Virus record (IMG/VR): IMGVR_UViG_3300049048_000052
Span: 124,001 to 188,000 of that record
Reading direction: 5' to 3' (one strand)
DNA: 64,000 nt
The position numbers were made by a program, and so were the translations under genes. Position 1 is the stretch's first letter; each line of letters begins with the position of its first letter. Shown here one piece after another: positions 329 through 41,257 of this stretch. The notes under the pieces were generated by a model that was given only the letters and a program-made list of their open reading frames with translations, made no database searches and was not told the DNA's origin.

Positions 329-402
329 GTCCCTGTGGTCCAACTGGTAGAGGTAACGGACTTAAAATCCGTGTGTTGTGGGTTCGAATCCCACCAGGGA
401 CA
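329..402 (+). tRNA. tRNA-Leu(UAA), short variable loop
   Basis: Acceptor GTCCCTG/CAGGGAC+A; anticodon arm ACGGA-CTTAAAA-TCCGT; T arm GTGGG-TTCGAAT-CCCAC; 5-nt variable loop; no CCA. Confidence 0.9.
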
Positions 403-4554: not shown

Positions 4555-4827
4555 ATGAGCTATGAGAGTCCTAATGATCTTATTGTGGGATTCTATGTCA
4601 ATAGGATCTTAGAGTTAGCTGAGACAGACCCTGAGCTAGAGGAAACATTTGACTATATAGAGGAGAACCTTAGCGATGCTACTGAAGAGATCATAGCTGA
4701 GGTTACCATCAAGGTAGGTAGAAGATTAAAGGATAAACATAAGGGTAAGTACATATTGTTCTTAGTCTATATGTATGGACCTGATACTGAAGATATATTA
4801 CAGATAGATAGGAAGATCATATGTTAA
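4555..4827 (+). CDS. hypothetical protein
   Basis: ORF with GAGAGG SD. Confidence 0.6.
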   Translation: MSYESPNDLIVGFYVNRILELAETDPELEETFDYIEENLSDATEEIIAEVTIKVGRRLKDKHKGKYILFLVYMYGPDTEDILQIDRKIIC

Positions 4828-5375
4828 TAGAGAGGCTCCTAATGGAGGGGGCGGATGTATCTATATATTACATAGATAACCTTGATACGGCAATGTTAAT
4901 GGATGAGTTAACAAAAGCTGTAGAATGGGATACTATGGGTGGTACTAGAAGGAAGATGGCATGGTTTGGAAGGGGAGAGTATACCTATCGGGATAGACTT
5001 CATAAACCTCAGGATATGCCATTGGTCGTTAAGATAGCTAAGGCACCAGTAGAACGAGTGACTGGCCACACCTACAATGGTTGTCTAGCTAATTGTTATG
5101 AGAATGGGAGGATAGGGGTTAACTGGCATTCAGATGATGAGTCTATACCAGGTTCACCTATAGCCATACTATCTCTAGGTGCAACCCGTACCTTTAGGAT
5201 GATGCATAAAGTATTAGGTATCAGCAGGGAGTGGAGACTGGCAGCAGGTACTGTACTTGTCATGTCTGGTCCTACTCAAGAGAACTGGATGCATTGCATT
5301 CCTAAAGAGGGAGAAGTTAAAGAGGCTCGTATCAGTCTTACATACAGACAAACTAAGTTGACCTCCGTAGATTGA
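4821..5375 (+). CDS. alkB: AlkB-family 2OG-Fe(II) dioxygenase
   Basis: N.CLANCY..G....WHSDDE, SLGATRTF, WMHCIPK, RISLTYR motifs. Confidence 0.9.
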   Translation: MLIERLLMEGADVSIYYIDNLDTAMLMDELTKAVEWDTMGGTRRKMAWFGRGEYTYRDRLHKPQDMPLVVKIAKAPVERVTGHTYNGCLANCYENGRIGVNWHSDDESIPGSPIAILSLGATRTFRMMHKVLGISREWRLAAGTVLVMSGPTQENWMHCIPKEGEVKEARISLTYRQTKLTSVD

Positions 5376-5417
5376 GGGGTTATGCTTAGAGTATATAGTT
5401 AGTAATCTTATACTCTA

Positions 5418-5831
5418 ATGCATAGCAAGTCGAAGGGTAACATAGGGCAGTTTTATGCTGCTGCTAAATTGGCCGAGTTAGAGTTCGCCGTATTCACTGA
5501 GGAGGGAGATAACTCCAAGGTGGATATAATAGGGGTTAAGGATAATATAATACTTAGGTTTCAGGTAAAAGCTGTAACTCCTAAGAATAATACATTAGCT
5601 TTAATGCTGAAGAAATCTGGTCCTAATTATAAGTTTAAGTATAAAGAGGAGATGTTTGACTACTTTATAGTAGTTGACCTTATTAGCTTTAAAGTATATG
5701 CTGTAAGTTCGGAGGTACTAAGAACCCATCAAGATACTTTTACTATAAGATTAGTAGCAGCGAAAAACAAGCAGAGTTGTAATACGAATGAGGCAGACGA
5801 TTACCTCATGGAGAAAGTTTTGGGTCATTAA
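5418..5831 (+). CDS. PD-(D/E)XK homing endonuclease (I-Ssp6803I-like)
   Basis: SKSKGNIG, VDII...RFQVK, Y..EMFDYF motifs; stop codon lies inside tRNA-Lys. Confidence 0.75.
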   Translation: MHSKSKGNIGQFYAAAKLAELEFAVFTEEGDNSKVDIIGVKDNIILRFQVKAVTPKNNTLALMLKKSGPNYKFKYKEEMFDYFIVVDLISFKVYAVSSEVLRTHQDTFTIRLVAAKNKQSCNTNEADDYLMEKVLGH

Positions 5832-5894
5832 CTTAGCGGCTAAAGTACCTAGCTTTTAACTAGGGAACCGAAGGTTCGAGTCCTTCATGACCCA
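5822..5894 (+). tRNA. tRNA-Lys(UUU)
   Basis: Acceptor GGGTCAT/ATGACCC+A; anticodon arm CCTAG-CTTTTAA-CTAGG; T arm GAAGG-TTCGAGT-CCTTC. Confidence 0.95.
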
Positions 5895-5953
5895 CTGGTT
5901 CTATAAAATAGAACTGGTTGAGGGGGAGTGGTGTAATGGTAGCCACGCAGGTC

Positions 5954-6499
5954 TTAACTCATTGGAGTTAGTTGGTGTATTAGTTTATAAGCGTTCTTAA
6001 CTAGATCTCTAGAGAGCATCTTACCACCAGATATCAATTTTATAATTGGGTTCTTGCGTGAGTGGTCTAACTGAAATCTAGCTTGAGGATATAAGTCCAG
6101 GAAGGATGTGGCAGTATCTTTATTAGAGGCAGCTATTTCTATCCTATAAGTCTTAACTTTATAGACTTGTACTAAAAGTTGCTTTATCAGATCTATTAAA
6201 GTAGGATCCTGGTTGCAGAAGTAAACATGATTTGTTTTATCTGTATGCCAGCCCTCACATAAATAGGCCGTATGGGCAGCAATGGAAAGAGGTGTTAGGA
6301 GTAAATCATCTGTAGGGGAGATATAGTTCTTCCTAGCTAGAAAGTTATACTCTGAGGCAGATCTCATTGGTATATGGTACTTCCTTAAGTAAGACCTAAT
6401 AGTCTTATGGTTACAGGCTAGTAACTGACCTATCTGATAGGGATTAAGTTCCTGAGTCAGGTATAGATCCTCAAGTACCTCTTTATTAATTAACTTCAT
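5954..6499 (-). CDS. intron-encoded HTH + LAGLIDADG-like endonuclease, antisense to the intron
   Basis: N-terminal HTH (LEDLYL...QIGQLLACNHKTIRSYLRKYHI); AYLCEGW...VYFCNQDPTLI LAGLIDADG-like block. Confidence 0.7.
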   Translation of the reverse strand: MKLINKEVLEDLYLTQELNPYQIGQLLACNHKTIRSYLRKYHIPMRSASEYNFLARKNYISPTDDLLLTPLSIAAHTAYLCEGWHTDKTNHVYFCNQDPTLIDLIKQLLVQVYKVKTYRIEIAASNKDTATSFLDLYPQARFQLDHSRKNPIIKLISGGKMLSRDLVKNAYKLIHQLTPMS

Positions 6500-6753
6500 A
6501 ATCCTGAGCCTTCATGTAGAAATACATGTTGTGAACGAAGCTATATGCGGGAAACGCTTAAAGCCTACAACACTATATGTCTACCAAGATATAAGTAACA
6601 GTTTGTAGGATGTAACAATAGCCAATCCGCAGGGAAGATACCTAGGTATCCCCTCAGAGACTAAACGCTTTGCACCTTAACGTAGAGACGAAGGTGATGA
6701 TATAGTCCAGACTACAACAGCTTACGCTGGCCTATGAAAGTAGGAGTAGTAAG
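5956..6753 (+). mobile_element. group I intron in tRNA-Leu anticodon (after U34)
   Basis: Exon ends in U, intron ends in G; core elements ATATGCGGGAAA (P), AATCCGCAGG (Q), TCAGAGACTAAA (R), GATGATATAGTCC (S); IGS-like GAGCCT at 6506-6511. Confidence 0.9.
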
Positions 6754-6908
6754 AGGAACCTGTGCCGCAAGGCGTGAGAGTTCGAATCTCTCCTCCCCCA
6801 TTTACAGTAGTGAGCACACGGTATGATGTAGGGTTCCCCCTACTTGTACTAAGGCTAATACCTTTGCTATATTCACTACTGTAAACATATTGATTGTTTC
6901 TAATAATT

Positions 6909-7325
6909 ATGGAAACACAAATGGCATTATTTGGTTTTGGTGGTTCTAACTCTGCTATCGATGAGTTAAGCCGTGTCTTAGGTGCAAGTAGCTCTATTGC
7001 TAGCCAACAGAGTCCCCCGTATGAAATTGGGATCTCTGATCGTAAACTAGTAGTTAAGTTCATAGTACCTGGTATCGATAAGGATACTGTTGATGTGACC
7101 ATCCATGATAAGTACGTAGAGCTATATGGCATGCGTAAGAAGGATGATAAGTTAGCAGTTGAACTGAGTGAGTTCTATTACGGTAAGGTTTATCGTACAG
7201 CCCCACTAAGTCAGAGAGTAGACAGAAACTCTGCCTCTGTATCTTACTCAGATGGTATTCTGACTCTCTCTATGGATCTATTACCAGTTAATCCTCCCAC
7301 TGCGGTTAGGGTTAAATTAGGTTAA
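6909..7325 (+). CDS. hsp20: small heat shock protein Hsp20
   Basis: VPGIDKDTVDVTI, EFYYGKVYRT, ASVSYSDGILTL alpha-crystallin motifs; start moved to ATG 6909. Confidence 0.9.
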   Translation: METQMALFGFGGSNSAIDELSRVLGASSSIASQQSPPYEIGISDRKLVVKFIVPGIDKDTVDVTIHDKYVELYGMRKKDDKLAVELSEFYYGKVYRTAPLSQRVDRNSASVSYSDGILTLSMDLLPVNPPTAVRVKLG

Positions 7326-7347
7326 ACATTATAGGAGTTATTGATCT

Positions 7348-7860
7348 ATGCAGTTAAACATTATGAGTGGTTCTACGGGGGATCCACCTTGGAGAACAGA
7401 TGATGTGGGTAGGCGTATCCCAGACCGAACTGGGACAACTAAGGGTGGTTATATACCGGACTATCCTGGTATCGGTTTCCCTAAGCCTCCTAATACTTTC
7501 TATCACCTAATTAACTCAACCTATAAGGCACCTGCTGATATACCATGTGATGCTAATAGTGTTGGCACTCAGTTCATCGCTGTGTTCAACTTGGGTGGTG
7601 TAAGGAAGGAGGATATTGATATCACTGTCCATCCTGACAGAGTAGAGATATCTGCTACTAGAAGTCTCAGCGGCCCTAAGTCGTTGAGTCTTTATAGTAG
7701 TGAAGTCTCCTGCGGTAAGCTAAGGCGCACCATCCCATTTGAGGATACTAAGGTCAACATCGAGACAGCTAAGGCTGACTATGATAATGGACTGGTAACT
7801 CTCACAATGGACCTGCTTCAACCTAAGCCGCCACCGGCCGTCAAGGTAGAAATCAAATAA
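7348..7860 (+). CDS. hsp20: small heat shock protein Hsp20 (second copy)
   Basis: LGGVRKEDIDITV, GKLRRTIPF, AKADYDNGLVTL. Confidence 0.9.
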   Translation: MQLNIMSGSTGDPPWRTDDVGRRIPDRTGTTKGGYIPDYPGIGFPKPPNTFYHLINSTYKAPADIPCDANSVGTQFIAVFNLGGVRKEDIDITVHPDRVEISATRSLSGPKSLSLYSSEVSCGKLRRTIPFEDTKVNIETAKADYDNGLVTLTMDLLQPKPPPAVKVEIK

Positions 7861-7924
7861 GAAGGATACCTTCCTTACTGTATAACTGCTATAGTTATCA
7901 TTAGTAAGGAAGGTATTAACTTAT

Positions 7925-8272
7925 ATGGAAATGGATATATTTAGCCCCTCAAGACTCGTCTGTATTCACTATGGAAATAATGCTATAGATGAGATAATGG
8001 ATGGTAGAGCTGAGGAAGCCCTAGATAAACTAGAGAAGGCTCGTGAGGATGATATGTTCGATATGGAGCATTATCAATCTATACTGCTCTATGTGGGTGC
8101 ATGCCTTAAACAAGAGAGCATGGGCCATTATATACAATTCCTATTGACTATCTTTGATGAAGATGATATTACTAGTATTAACACCGCAGATTCTAAGGTC
8201 AATGGTGTCCTAGCGGAAGCGGCAGCAATCCATAGCGGGGATGGAGCAACGGGAGGCTCGATGGTCTCATAA
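7925..8272 (+). CDS. hypothetical protein (3' end overlaps tRNA)
   Basis: ORF with AAGGAAGG SD; stop codon falls in the anticodon loop of the tRNA at 8234. Confidence 0.55.
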   Translation: MEMDIFSPSRLVCIHYGNNAIDEIMDGRAEEALDKLEKAREDDMFDMEHYQSILLYVGACLKQESMGHYIQFLLTIFDEDDITSINTADSKVNGVLAEAAAIHSGDGATGGSMVS

Positions 8273-8308
8273 GCCATACATCGCTGAGTTCAATTCTCAG
8301 CCCCGACA
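8234..8308 (+). tRNA. tRNA-Met(CAU), initiator-like body, irregular acceptor stem
   Basis: D stem GAGC/GCTC; anticodon arm ATGGT-CTCATAA-GCCAT; T arm CTGAG-TTCAATT-CTCAG; only CGGGG/CCCCG of the acceptor pairs. Confidence 0.7.
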
Positions 8309-8310
8309 TT

Positions 8311-8535
8311 GTCAGTTTACCTGTCCTGACGTTGTGAAAAGATAGGTGTAGGTCATAGGCCTAACTAGCAAGAATTGAGTTCGAATCTCAACAGGTCCAT
8401 TTCGAGGGCCTGACTTGGTAATCGATTGTTAGCATGAGGAACTATGACTGAAGGTGTGTACAACCAAAGTACAGAACAACAAGTGCAACCAATAACATTG
8501 TACCCTTCTCAAGGGTAAGTTCTATAGTAGTGTAA
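8311..8535 (+). ncRNA. ssrA: tmRNA, circularly permuted (two-piece): acceptor piece about 8311-8399, coding piece from 8406; tag ORF 8485-8535 ATNNIVPFSRVSSIVV*
   Basis: T arm TTGAG-TTCGAAT-CTCAA and CAGGTCC-A lie upstream of the 5' strand GGGCCTG (G3:U70); P2 helices GTCATAG/CTATGAC and CTAGCAA/TTGTTAG; pseudoknots at 8311-8347 and about 8453-8473; cyanobacterial-type NNIVPF tag. Confidence 0.9.
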
Positions 8536-8540
8536 TCTAC

Positions 8541-9305
8541 TCAGGCGTTTAGTATACTAAACGCCTGCTCTTTTTTACGCATACAGTAGGGACCACCTAA
8601 GTTATATAACCTAAATATAAAAGTCTTAAGGATTTTACCTTGAAAGGAGAAACCGTACTGATTATTCCAGTTGGGATTCTTACTTTGCAAGTCCCTCATA
8701 TGTACATTAAGGGATATATCTAGTAGTTTGTTGAGCCTAGAGGCTAGAGTATACATAAAAGACTTTGAGCATCCATAGGCTGTAAGTCTACGGGAGGACC
8801 AACACCCGTCAGAGTCTAGATATCCTCTAATGAAATCTAACTCGTAGACGCTGTCTATAAGAGGCTCAGGGTAAATCATAGTCTTGGACTTATTACTTTC
8901 TAACTTTAGGATAGTAGTTAGATCTCTATGTAGACTAGTGGAACATATAGCGAGCTGAAGACAGTTAGAAGCTATATTCCTTATTTTATAATCGGTATTG
9001 AGGTTAGATTGTATCTGTTCTAGAATATCCCTGTCCGAGGTAGTAAATACTATCTGACATCCATTTCTATGTAAGTGACCATCCCCATACAATACACCTA
9101 ACATCCAAGCTTTAAAGGTGTCCATAGGGAACAATTTATAGTTCTTAAGCTTAGATAATGGCTTATAGGACATTGCCCCGGAGCTCTGCAGGACTTTGTA
9201 TATACAATAAGAGGATAGCCCTAATTTAGAACTAATATTTGTAACAGACTGACCCTCCTTATACATAGTTATAATAGGCGTTGGGTTAATATGAGTAGAT
9301 TTCAT
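8541..9305 (-). CDS. double-motif LAGLIDADG homing endonuclease with N-terminal HTH
   Basis: AWMLGVLYGDGHL and DFIRGYLDSDGCW motifs. Confidence 0.9.
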   Translation of the reverse strand: MKSTHINPTPIITMYKEGQSVTNISSKLGLSSYCIYKVLQSSGAMSYKPLSKLKNYKLFPMDTFKAWMLGVLYGDGHLHRNGCQIVFTTSDRDILEQIQSNLNTDYKIRNIASNCLQLAICSTSLHRDLTTILKLESNKSKTMIYPEPLIDSVYELDFIRGYLDSDGCWSSRRLTAYGCSKSFMYTLASRLNKLLDISLNVHMRDLQSKNPNWNNQYGFSFQGKILKTFIFRLYNLGGPYCMRKKEQAFSILNA

Positions 9306-10991: not shown

Positions 10992-11061
10992 TTCCCAGTC
11001 GCATAACTTGCGTTCCCAACTGGGATTCTTAGCAATGGTTGGCTTAGTCCAATCATTTCTT

Positions 11062-11134
11062 GAGGCTGTCGTCTAAAATGGTAGGACTCCCCAAGTTAGT
11101 GGGGCAGATGTAGGTTCAAATCCTACCGGCTTCA
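11062..11134 (+). tRNA. tRNA-like RNA with 6-nt anticodon loop (undetermined isotype)
   Basis: Acceptor GAGGCTG/CGGCTTC+A (G3:U70); D stem GTCT/GGAC; CCCCA-AGTTAG-TGGGG; T arm GTAGG-TTCAAAT-CCTAC. Confidence 0.7.
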
Positions 11135-11139
11135 TTTAT

Positions 11140-11211
11140 GCAGTGTTGGTCTAATGGATAAGACGTCTCCAAACTAAGGAGTTAATGTAGGTTCGATTCC
11201 TGCTAACTGCG
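11140..11211 (+). tRNA. tRNA-like RNA, loop AAACTAA (nominal ACT, no U33)
   Basis: D stem GTCT/AGAC; CTCC-AAACTAA-GGAG; T arm GTAGG-TTCGATT-CCTGC; 5-bp acceptor GCAGT/ACTGC. Confidence 0.6.
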
Positions 11212-11316
11212 TTTGTGATTTATACAACTTAATATAGTGACCATAATCACCCCACATTACACAAAGCATATCCTCTTAATATTCAGTATTAACTACTGTA
11301 GGTATTAGAGGATATT

Positions 11317-39670: not shown

Positions 39671-39716
39671 GATAATAGGTGGGGTCAACACTCCACCCAT
39701 TATTTTAAGAGCTAAT

Positions 39717-41257
39717 ATGAAATTAGAAGTACTAGATAAAGGTTTTATAGAGGTGGTCGATACCTTAGGTAGCGATCTAACCGTTGTTAATAGCGCTAGG
39801 GTATCCTTTGGACATCGTAAGGAGTCCCTTGATAAATCAGATATTAAGTTAATTGGATATTTAAAGAAGCACAAGCACTATTCTCCATTTCGCCATATGA
39901 TGGTGCAGCTGCATATCAAGATGCCTGAGGTGGTGGCAAGACAACTGTTAACAGAAATGGTGACCAGTAAATACAACTCCCTTGTATTAATCTAGTAATA
40001 GATTATGCAAAGGATAAATCAATGATTCTAGAGACTAAGGGCGATAAGGTACTACGTAGATGCGATACCTGTGGTAATGAGAAGTGGGTTGAGAAATGGA
40101 AGTACTATAAACTAGAGGAGCACACCTGTAGAGATTGTTACTGCCGATTAAAAGCAGCAGCACGTAAAGGTAAACCTTCTAGATACAAAGGTATTATTAG
40201 GCAACCCAATCCTAAGAGAGGGAGTACTTATATTAATTCCTCAGGTTACGTCGAGGAGTATATAGGTGCTGTAGATAATAATAGGAAAGGCAAGTATTAT
40301 CTCCAACACAGATTAATAGTTGAGAAGTACCTAGGTAGAGTCCTTGATAAATCAGAACTAGTTCACCATATTAATGGTGACAAAACTGATAATCGACTTG
40401 AGAACCTATACCTATGTCAATCTATGTCTCACCACAAGACTCTACACCAACAATTAGAGCAAGTATCTATGCAATTGGTTAAACTAAATCTTATAGAATT
40501 TGATAATGAAGCTGGTAGCTATAGAATAGCAGCCCATATCAGTAATGATATGGTGAATAATCCTGTGAATTCAGGGGAACCCCTAACGTATAATGACGAG
40601 GGCAATCCTGATCCAAGCTTTGAAGAGTAGTCTTCATTGAAGGAGCAACGACTATCCGTAAGGAGTAGGGCTCAAGGGAGCTCGAAGCGCAGGACATCCT
40701 AATAGGATGATGATATAGTCTGAGCTTTAGGGAGACCTAAAGAGAGTGTATGGAGCCGATATACTCGTAACATAACTGATAAACATGTCGTAGGTATTGA
40801 GACCTCCTCTTCCTCTGTATGTAAGGATCATGCATGGAATGAGATTAGTAGACGTTATGTAGAGATAGATGATTACTATGTGCCAGACATCTGGCGCCTG
40901 CAGTCTCCTTCTAATAAGCAAGCATCTCAGTTAGATGAACACGGTAATCCTATAGTTAACGAGGCTATACAAGAGTGGGCCTGTAAGGAATACGCAGACT
41001 TTATAGCTTCCCTAGATCTTAAGGTTAAAGCATTTATAGCTAAGGGTATTGCTAAAGAGCAGGCACAGATCATGCTGCCTATCTCTTTCTATACTGAGAT
41101 CTATTGGACCGCATCATTCCAGGCCATCATGAACTTCATTGAGCTTAGGAATGACAACCATGCCCAATGGGAGATTAGGCAGTATGCCCTTGCACTCCTC
41201 CGAATAATGGAGCAATTATTCCCAGTCTGCACTAATGCATGGTTAGAGAATAGCTGA
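39717..41257 (+). CDS. thyX: flavin-dependent thymidylate synthase, split by group I intron (exons 39717-39948, 40779-41257)
   Basis: NSARVS, HYSPF; spliced junction restores VARQLYKHVVG...WNEISRRY; HAQWEIR. Confidence 0.95.
39949..40778 (+). mobile_element. group I intron in thyX
   Basis: U|...G| boundaries; AATTCAGGGGAA (P), AATCCTGATCCAAG (Q), GCAACGACTA (R), GATGATATAGTCT (S); IGS GCAG at 40529-40532. Confidence 0.9.
40022..40630 (+). CDS. intron-encoded HNH homing endonuclease
   Basis: CxxC pairs; QHRLIVEKYLGR.L...E.VHHINGDKTDNRLENL. Confidence 0.9.
   Translation: MILETKGDKVLRRCDTCGNEKWVEKWKYYKLEEHTCRDCYCRLKAAARKGKPSRYKGIIRQPNPKRGSTYINSSGYVEEYIGAVDNNRKGKYYLQHRLIVEKYLGRVLDKSELVHHINGDKTDNRLENLYLCQSMSHHKTLHQQLEQVSMQLVKLNLIEFDNEAGSYRIAAHISNDMVNNPVNSGEPLTYNDEGNPDPSFEE

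Follow-up and report, generated by a model that had tools for sequence, protein, structure and literature searches.

A type II tRNA-Leu(UAG) gene in the genome of a jumbo phage is interrupted in its anticodon loop by a group I intron, and the intron carries on its opposite strand a gene for a 181-aa protein, a putative homing endonuclease with a predicted N-terminal helix-turn-helix (HTH) domain and a single predicted LAGLIDADG-fold domain. The window analyzed is a stretch of 64,000 nucleotides from the IMG/VR record IMGVR_UViG_3300049048_000052, a 251,780-bp virus genome from a soil metagenome that CheckV rates as complete. The window encodes ribonucleotide reductase, rIIA, a DNA polymerase, a helicase and a tail fibre protein. 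In its default mode, ARAGORN reported ten tRNA genes and one tmRNA-like call in the window but missed the split gene, which was called as tRNA-Leu(tag), with a 798-nt intron after position 34, only when introns were allowed. The coordinates of the features are collected in Table 1.

Table 1. Coordinates in the window of the split tRNA-Leu(UAG) gene, its group I intron and the antisense gene.
Feature	Position	Strand	Description
tRNA-Leu(UAG) gene	5922-6800	+	Type II
Exon 1	5922-5955	+	G1 to U34; 5' splice site after U34 (5955)
Group I intron	5956-6753	+	798 nt; first base A5956, last base the terminal G (omega-G) at 6753
Antisense gene	5954-6499	-	181-aa protein with HTH domain and LAGLIDADG-fold domain (predicted); putative homing endonuclease
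Stop codon of antisense gene	5954-5956	-	Complement of U33, U34 and intron base 1
Start codon of antisense gene	6497-6499	-	Complement of the ATG lies 2 nt before the guide sequence
Rfam RF00028 match	6487-6728	+	66.8 bits
Internal guide sequence	6502-6508	+	UCCU (6502-6505) pairs with A35-A38 to form P10; GAG (6506-6508) pairs with C32-U33-U34 to form P1, with a G-U wobble at the splice site
Ribozyme core, P2 to P9	6509-6753	+	L2 and L9 are GAAA loops
P3	6536-6541 with 6667-6672	+	
P7	6659-6663 with 6703-6707	+	Five pairs
Exon 2	6754-6800	+	A35 G36 G37 A38, 3' strand of the anticodon stem, long variable arm, T arm, acceptor 3' strand and A73; no CCA encoded

The Rfam group I model RF00028 matches the ribozyme core above its gathering score of 50 (E = 9e-15). 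Through homologs of the antisense protein we identified nine further distinct loci on phage contigs with the same architecture, designated L006, L009, L013, L014, L015, L016, L017, L026 and L027, and the spliced sequences of all ten fold as tRNA-Leu(UAG) of 81-85 nt, that of the window being 81 nt. RNAalifold applied to the ten loci predicts P2, P3, P4, P5, a P5 extension, P6 and P9, with 52 pairs of which 32 have compensatory changes. P7 forms a pseudoknot that RNAalifold cannot draw and was counted separately together with P8; L006 keeps the five pairs of P7 through two double changes, and P8 also covaries. All of the defining RNA features of a group I intron are therefore present.

The position of the splice junction is fixed by covariation between the anticodon loop and the guide sequence, which is in effect complementary to the whole seven-base loop. 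In the alignment of the ribozyme parts, a nearly invariant (U/A)CCU|GA(G/A) lies just after the ORF start. In P1, L009 and L027 have U32 where the others have C32, and their guide reads GAA instead of GAG. In P10, U38 is accompanied by ACCU in L009 and L027, and A37 by AUCU in L006. A G precedes the 3' splice site in all ten loci. A second UCCUGAG inside the ORF (about 6451-6457) is not the homologous guide sequence according to the alignment. A hairpin read by eye at the 5' end of the intron (bases 5956-5969) could mimic a local P1 with a splice site after U33, but the base before the matching 3' site would be an A, and the aligned guide sequence explains the covariation. The original prediction, which placed the intron after U34 and derived a spliced UAG anticodon although the unspliced gene reads C5953 T T A A5957, is supported on both counts, as is its placement of the antisense ORF between the 5' splice site and the guide sequence.

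The antisense ORF is not a chance frame. It has 35 homologs at 38-61% identity, and between the close intron-borne pair L013 and L017 dN/dS is 0.09, from 44 synonymous and 19 nonsynonymous differences; the gene is therefore kept by selection. In 8 of the 10 loci the stop codon is the complement of U33, U34 and intron base 1, and in all ten the ATG lies from an overlap of 1 nt to 5 nt from the guide sequence. The gene therefore fills the P1 loop exactly, and always on the opposite strand. The complement of the guide sequence and of the 5' strand of P2 (...AAGGCUCAGG...) may offer a Shine-Dalgarno-like stretch before the ATG, although this is only our reading of the sequence. A promoter and terminator scan turned up nothing usable for the minus-strand gene.

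The original prediction of an HTH and LAGLIDADG-like protein holds at the level of fold only. No LAGLIDADG Pfam family matched the protein encoded in the window at E <= 10, or any of the 35 family members at E <= 1, and no Pfam nuclease family matches it. Only the N-terminal HTH region is recognized by sequence: PHROGs matched that region alone, and a profile search of PDB sequences found only weak HTH matches and a chance LAP2alpha match. An AlphaFold model built from the alignment has a mean pLDDT of 92. Although Foldseek against PDB with the two-domain model gave no match at E <= 0.001, an exhaustive structural search matched residues 1-50 to HTH domains and residues 57-181 to LAGLIDADG endonuclease domains, at Z scores of 9.1 down to 5.0, a range that the tool itself calls middling. 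The best was the TliVMA intein endonuclease domain at Z 9.1, then I-DmoI at 7.0, followed at lower Z by WhiA, E-DreI, I-Vdi141I, I-MsoI, I-CreI, PI-PfuI and I-CeuI. In the model each of the two beta-hairpins expected of the alpha-beta-beta-alpha-beta-beta-alpha core is instead broken by a helix. Twenty-two columns of the protein alignment are invariant, including the motif Y-x-C-E-G-x-H. The Glu-Gly of this motif, E82-G83, is invariant in 35 sequences and ends helix 70-82, which is the place of the catalytic acid of the LAGLIDADG motif; its catalytic role is inferred.

A two-copy prediction of residues 56-181 gave an ipSAE score of 0.59 against a best control of 0.00, a mark reached by 20 of 30 proteins solved as pairs of one chain and by 1 of 23 solved as single chains. 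The three runs agree in at least 93% of contacts and partner pLDDT is 86. The interface residues are 68-82, 100-107 and 171-179, with helix 70-82 packed against its own copy, as in I-CreI-type dimers. This prediction supports dimerization but does not demonstrate it. The homodimeric single-domain LAGLIDADG homing endonucleases I-CreI, I-CeuI and I-MsoI share with the phage protein the fold of residues about 60-180, an acidic residue followed by Gly at the end of the first helix, and the two-fold dimer, predicted here, through that helix. The phage protein differs in lacking sequence-level membership, in its motif, which reads AYLCEGWH, and in possessing an extra N-terminal HTH domain.

The same protein family also occurs outside introns, beside tRNA(UAG) genes and antisense to them. 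In the related loci L029, L030 and L031 it abuts and reads into the 3' half of an intact type II tRNA-Leu(UAG), and in L007, L011 and L023 it does the same with a shorter, class I-length tRNA(UAG), with no ribozyme beyond it. In L032 it lies 58 nt upstream of tRNA-Leu(UAG). Where it reads into the tRNA, the protein gains a C-terminal tail that is the antisense translation of the tRNA. These neighboring tRNAs mostly have U32 (UUUAG...), whereas most intron hosts have CUUAGGA, a difference that could make them resistant to cleavage, although this is speculation. On the protein tree the free-standing and intron-borne states are mixed, and well-supported branches force at least two switches, the direction of which is unresolved. 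Such an association with intact tRNA(UAG) genes is what one expects of an endonuclease aimed at this gene.

A 17-nt signature from J8/7-P7 of this ribozyme was found in at least 118 IMG/VR contigs. Of the 81 sites returned, 45 lie in split tRNA genes called by ARAGORN, some of them with doubtful splice sites. Twenty are in tRNA-Leu(UAA) at the classical CUU|...G|AAAA site, eight in tRNA-Arg(UCU), and three in tRNA-Leu(UAG), all three with the antisense protein described here; several others were also called. Nineteen of the tRNA-Leu(UAA) introns split into 10 ORF-less introns of 193-290 nt and 9 of 642-768 nt holding an ORF of at least 80 aa, which is on the sense strand in all but one of the nine. 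The premise of the original prediction that such introns are generally ORF-less therefore does not hold in phages. On a tree of the 3' 185 nt of the ribozymes, the ten UAG introns form one clade (SH-aLRT 96) that is sister to a clade of phage tRNA-Leu(UAA) introns, inserted at the same site, that mostly carry sense-strand ORFs; the one analyzed with Pfam (L026) is an HNH endonuclease. Support for the joint clade is 97, but the tree is unrooted, uses a short alignment, and was built with a quick method. The suggestion in the original prediction that the element could be a mobile relative of the classical trnL intron is only partly tested.

Our preferred model is of a probably mobile group I intron, and we hold it with good confidence, although splicing, DNA cleavage and homing are inferred. 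The pre-tRNA would be transcribed from the plus strand, the guide sequence would pair with the anticodon loop to form P1 and P10, and the P3-P9 core would catalyze the two transesterifications that release the 81-nt tRNA-Leu with anticodon UAG. The exon part of P1 is only 3 bp, and its two strands are about 540 nt apart. The protein most likely acts as a homodimer that cuts intron-less tRNA-Leu(UAG) genes at or near the anticodon arm, which is a natural inverted repeat in DNA, and recombinational repair during mixed infection would then copy the intron and its gene into the cut allele. No intron-less allele of this phage appeared in the four soil DNA runs that hold it when these were compared with positions 4800-8300, which yielded only the source contig, low-depth identical pieces, and tRNA-Leu fragments of other organisms. 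We infer that, with the gene on the other strand, the pre-tRNA holds no translatable frame, so that ribosomes cannot pull apart the long-range P1 pairing.

It is possible, although unlikely, that the intron splices as described but that the antisense protein is no longer, or never was, a DNA endonuclease. It could be a maturase, or an HTH regulator or DNA-binding protein tied to tRNA-Leu(UAG) loci, as WhiA is a LAGLIDADG-derived transcription factor. WhiA chains are among the best structural matches, at Z 6.7 and 5.9, no nuclease family matches by sequence, the HTH is the only part recognized by sequence, and free-standing copies lie next to hairpin-flanked AT-rich elements that could be operators. 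Instead, the invariant Glu-Gly at the end of the dimerization helix, the predicted I-CreI-like helix-helix interface, and the occurrence of the gene in both intron-borne and free-standing states beside one target gene, which is typical of homing endonucleases, favor an endonuclease. It is very unlikely that the locus is a dead tRNA gene whose intron no longer splices. Although P1 is weak and there are no RNA data, both exons still give a canonical tRNA in all ten loci, the core, P1 and P10 keep their pairing through compensatory changes, and ten diverged copies retain the same architecture. Least plausible is splicing at 5957|6756 to yield tRNA-Leu(UAA), which also gives an 81-nt tRNA in ARAGORN and is preceded by G6755, but which would place the 5' splice site after an A with no G-U wobble, breaks the covarying pairings, could not yield UAA in L009, where the first intron base is G, and would add to a tRNA with anticodon UAA that the phage already has at 329-402.

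A preprint lists 21 types of tRNA intron, with Leu.3Ug at exactly this site (CUU/a...g/AAAA) and the four classical types in subgroup IC3 (bioRxiv 10.1101/2020.01.27.920355). The Leu.3Ug site is likewise between U34 and A35 of a tRNA-Leu anticodon loop, with a short exon P1; the host gene here is the UAG isoacceptor of a phage, and the intron carries a gene on the opposite strand. The tRNA-fMet intron of Synechocystis PCC 6803 encodes I-Ssp6803I (Bonocora & Shub 2001, listed in PMC3984707), which is probably a PD-(D/E)XK protein encoded on the sense strand, whereas the protein here has a predicted LAGLIDADG fold and is encoded antisense in a phage. Antisense His-Cys box endonuclease genes are described for group I introns of nuclear rDNA (PMC9548176), which are eukaryotic and involve a different nuclease family. 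Free-standing phage homing endonucleases near their targets include T4 SegB in the tRNA cluster (PMC2330249). A 2014 review stated that all phage group I introns then known lay in protein-coding genes, despite the many phage tRNA genes (PMC3984707), and the "enigmatic" tRNA introns of Lak megaphages were subsequently reported as the first phage tRNA introns (Devoto et al. 2019, PMC6784885), the main text assigning them to no class and reporting no endonuclease gene in them. Lak-C1 holds a stretch similar to the 3' part of the ribozyme described here, next to a sequence resembling a tRNA-Leu exon 2, but the locus did not reach the Rfam threshold, its exon 1 could not be defined, and no ORF of at least 70 aa was found under code 15. 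No GenBank phage record holds a close copy of the locus or of the protein, and a plasmid collection matched only the tRNA part. In a literature search that was not exhaustive, we found no description of a group I intron in a phage tRNA-Leu(UAG) gene, of an antisense endonuclease gene in a bacterial-type group I intron, or of this protein family.

A broader and more tentative reading is that phage tRNA genes are a large, largely unrecognized reservoir of group I introns, within which one endonuclease family has moved repeatedly between a free-standing position beside tRNA-Leu(UAG) and the P1 loop of the intron of that gene, always antisense and with its stop codon built across the splice site. 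That would be a natural series showing how an ORF-less tRNA intron becomes mobile, and it would place the classical trnL intron lineage in phages as well as in cyanobacteria and plastids. The locus and its relatives are clear group I introns in phage tRNA genes, with defined splice sites, of a kind that standard tRNA finders miss. The protein defines a family, with a predicted LAGLIDADG fold, that sequence models miss and whose likely target is a short inverted repeat, the anticodon arm. The packing of an antisense endonuclease gene exactly between the 5' splice site and the guide sequence, for which we found no bacterial or phage precedent in the literature searched, suggests one way to keep translation from disturbing ribozyme folding. 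Because the family occurs both free-standing and inside the intron, the proposed route by which introns acquire endonuclease genes becomes testable.

The phage genome that carries the tRNA-Leu(UAG) intron holds a second split tRNA gene, located 2.8-3.5 kb upstream of the window start in L005, a sequence from the same genome. It is a tRNA-Arg(UCU) gene with a group I intron after U34, although ARAGORN calls it tRNA-Ser(gct) and the Arg(UCU) junction was derived by eye. That intron also carries an antisense endonuclease gene, but of another family, HNH_2. A stronger group I intron is found within the window, where a sense-strand HNH_3 endonuclease ORF runs into the ribozyme; this intron interrupts a protein-coding gene that, by eye, looks like a flavin-dependent thymidylate synthase (thyX). 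With two further RF00028 matches in the genome, one of them weak, the phage may carry up to five group I introns. A phage that has the UAG intron, represented by contig L026, also has a tRNA-Leu(UAA) gene split at U34/A35 by a group I intron, and in this case the intron carries a sense-strand HNH_3 ORF that runs into the ribozyme core.

Coordinates of additional introns, tRNA-related features and repeats in the phage genome and other phages
Sequence	Position	Strand	Feature	Details
L005	1032-1800 (G000:C1, the phage genome, about 120,456-121,224)		Split tRNA-Arg(UCU) gene	690-nt group I intron; RF00028 at 54.1 bits when searched alone
L005	1116-1586	-	HNH_2 endonuclease gene	156 aa
Window	starts near 39716		Interrupted protein-coding gene	
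Window	40022-40630		HNH_3 endonuclease ORF	Sense strand
Window	40510-40742		Group I intron	91.9 bits
Window; G000:C1	55772-56031; 676-968 (-)		Two further RF00028 matches	One weak at 29.4 bits and one at 71.8 bits
Window	6801-6813 and 6873-6885		Inverted repeat	Perfect, 13 bp, 59-nt spacer
Window	7691-7703		Copy of the repeat	One mismatch
Window	329-402, 405-481, 11061-11135, 11139-11212		Odd tRNA calls	Leu(taa) and Leu(gag) of 74 and 77 nt; one with a two-base anticodon (tt); one Ser(act)
Window	8233-8309		tRNA-Met	
Window	8310-8626		tmRNA call (ARAGORN)	
L026	4081-4918	-	Split tRNA-Leu(UAA) gene	752-nt group I intron; HNH_3 ORF of 211 aa
L031	1066-1089	-	Remnant of the 5' part of a tRNA-Leu	24 nt
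L151 (Lak-C1, MK250029.1)	331112-334172		Locus holding a stretch similar to the 3' part of the ribozyme	

An inverted repeat lies directly after the 3' end of the tRNA, and free-standing copies of the endonuclease gene (contigs L029-L032) have hairpin-flanked AT-rich elements just upstream of their start codons; these could be promoters or operators. In L031, the remnant of another tRNA-Leu lies directly upstream of the complete tRNA-Leu(UAG) that the free-standing endonuclease gene overlaps, and it looks as if an incoming tRNA-plus-gene cassette displaced a resident tRNA gene. Several tRNA calls within the window are unusual: the Leu(taa) and Leu(gag) calls are too short for a long variable arm, one tRNA has only a two-base "anticodon," and one is called Ser(act). 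ARAGORN also calls a tmRNA directly after tRNA-Met; however, Rfam reports no tmRNA family there at gathering threshold.

The ribozyme signature GAWGATATAGTCCRGAC occurs in at least 118 viral contigs of IMG/VR (among them L033-L112), although some of the short contigs may be bacterial rather than viral. Many of the sites lie in split tRNA genes, including Leu(UAA) and Arg(UCU), together with calls of Ser, Thr, Phe, Gln and Lys for which the splice sites are unconfirmed. Published, unannotated huge-phage genomes, namely Lak-C1 (MK250029.1), LR745208.1 and LR756508.1, hold stretches similar to the 3' part of this ribozyme next to tRNA-like exon 2 sequences. Some of the "enigmatic" Lak tRNA introns may therefore be group I introns. 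LR756508.1 also holds a HEARO RNA (RF02033, 144 bits) beside its tRNA cluster.
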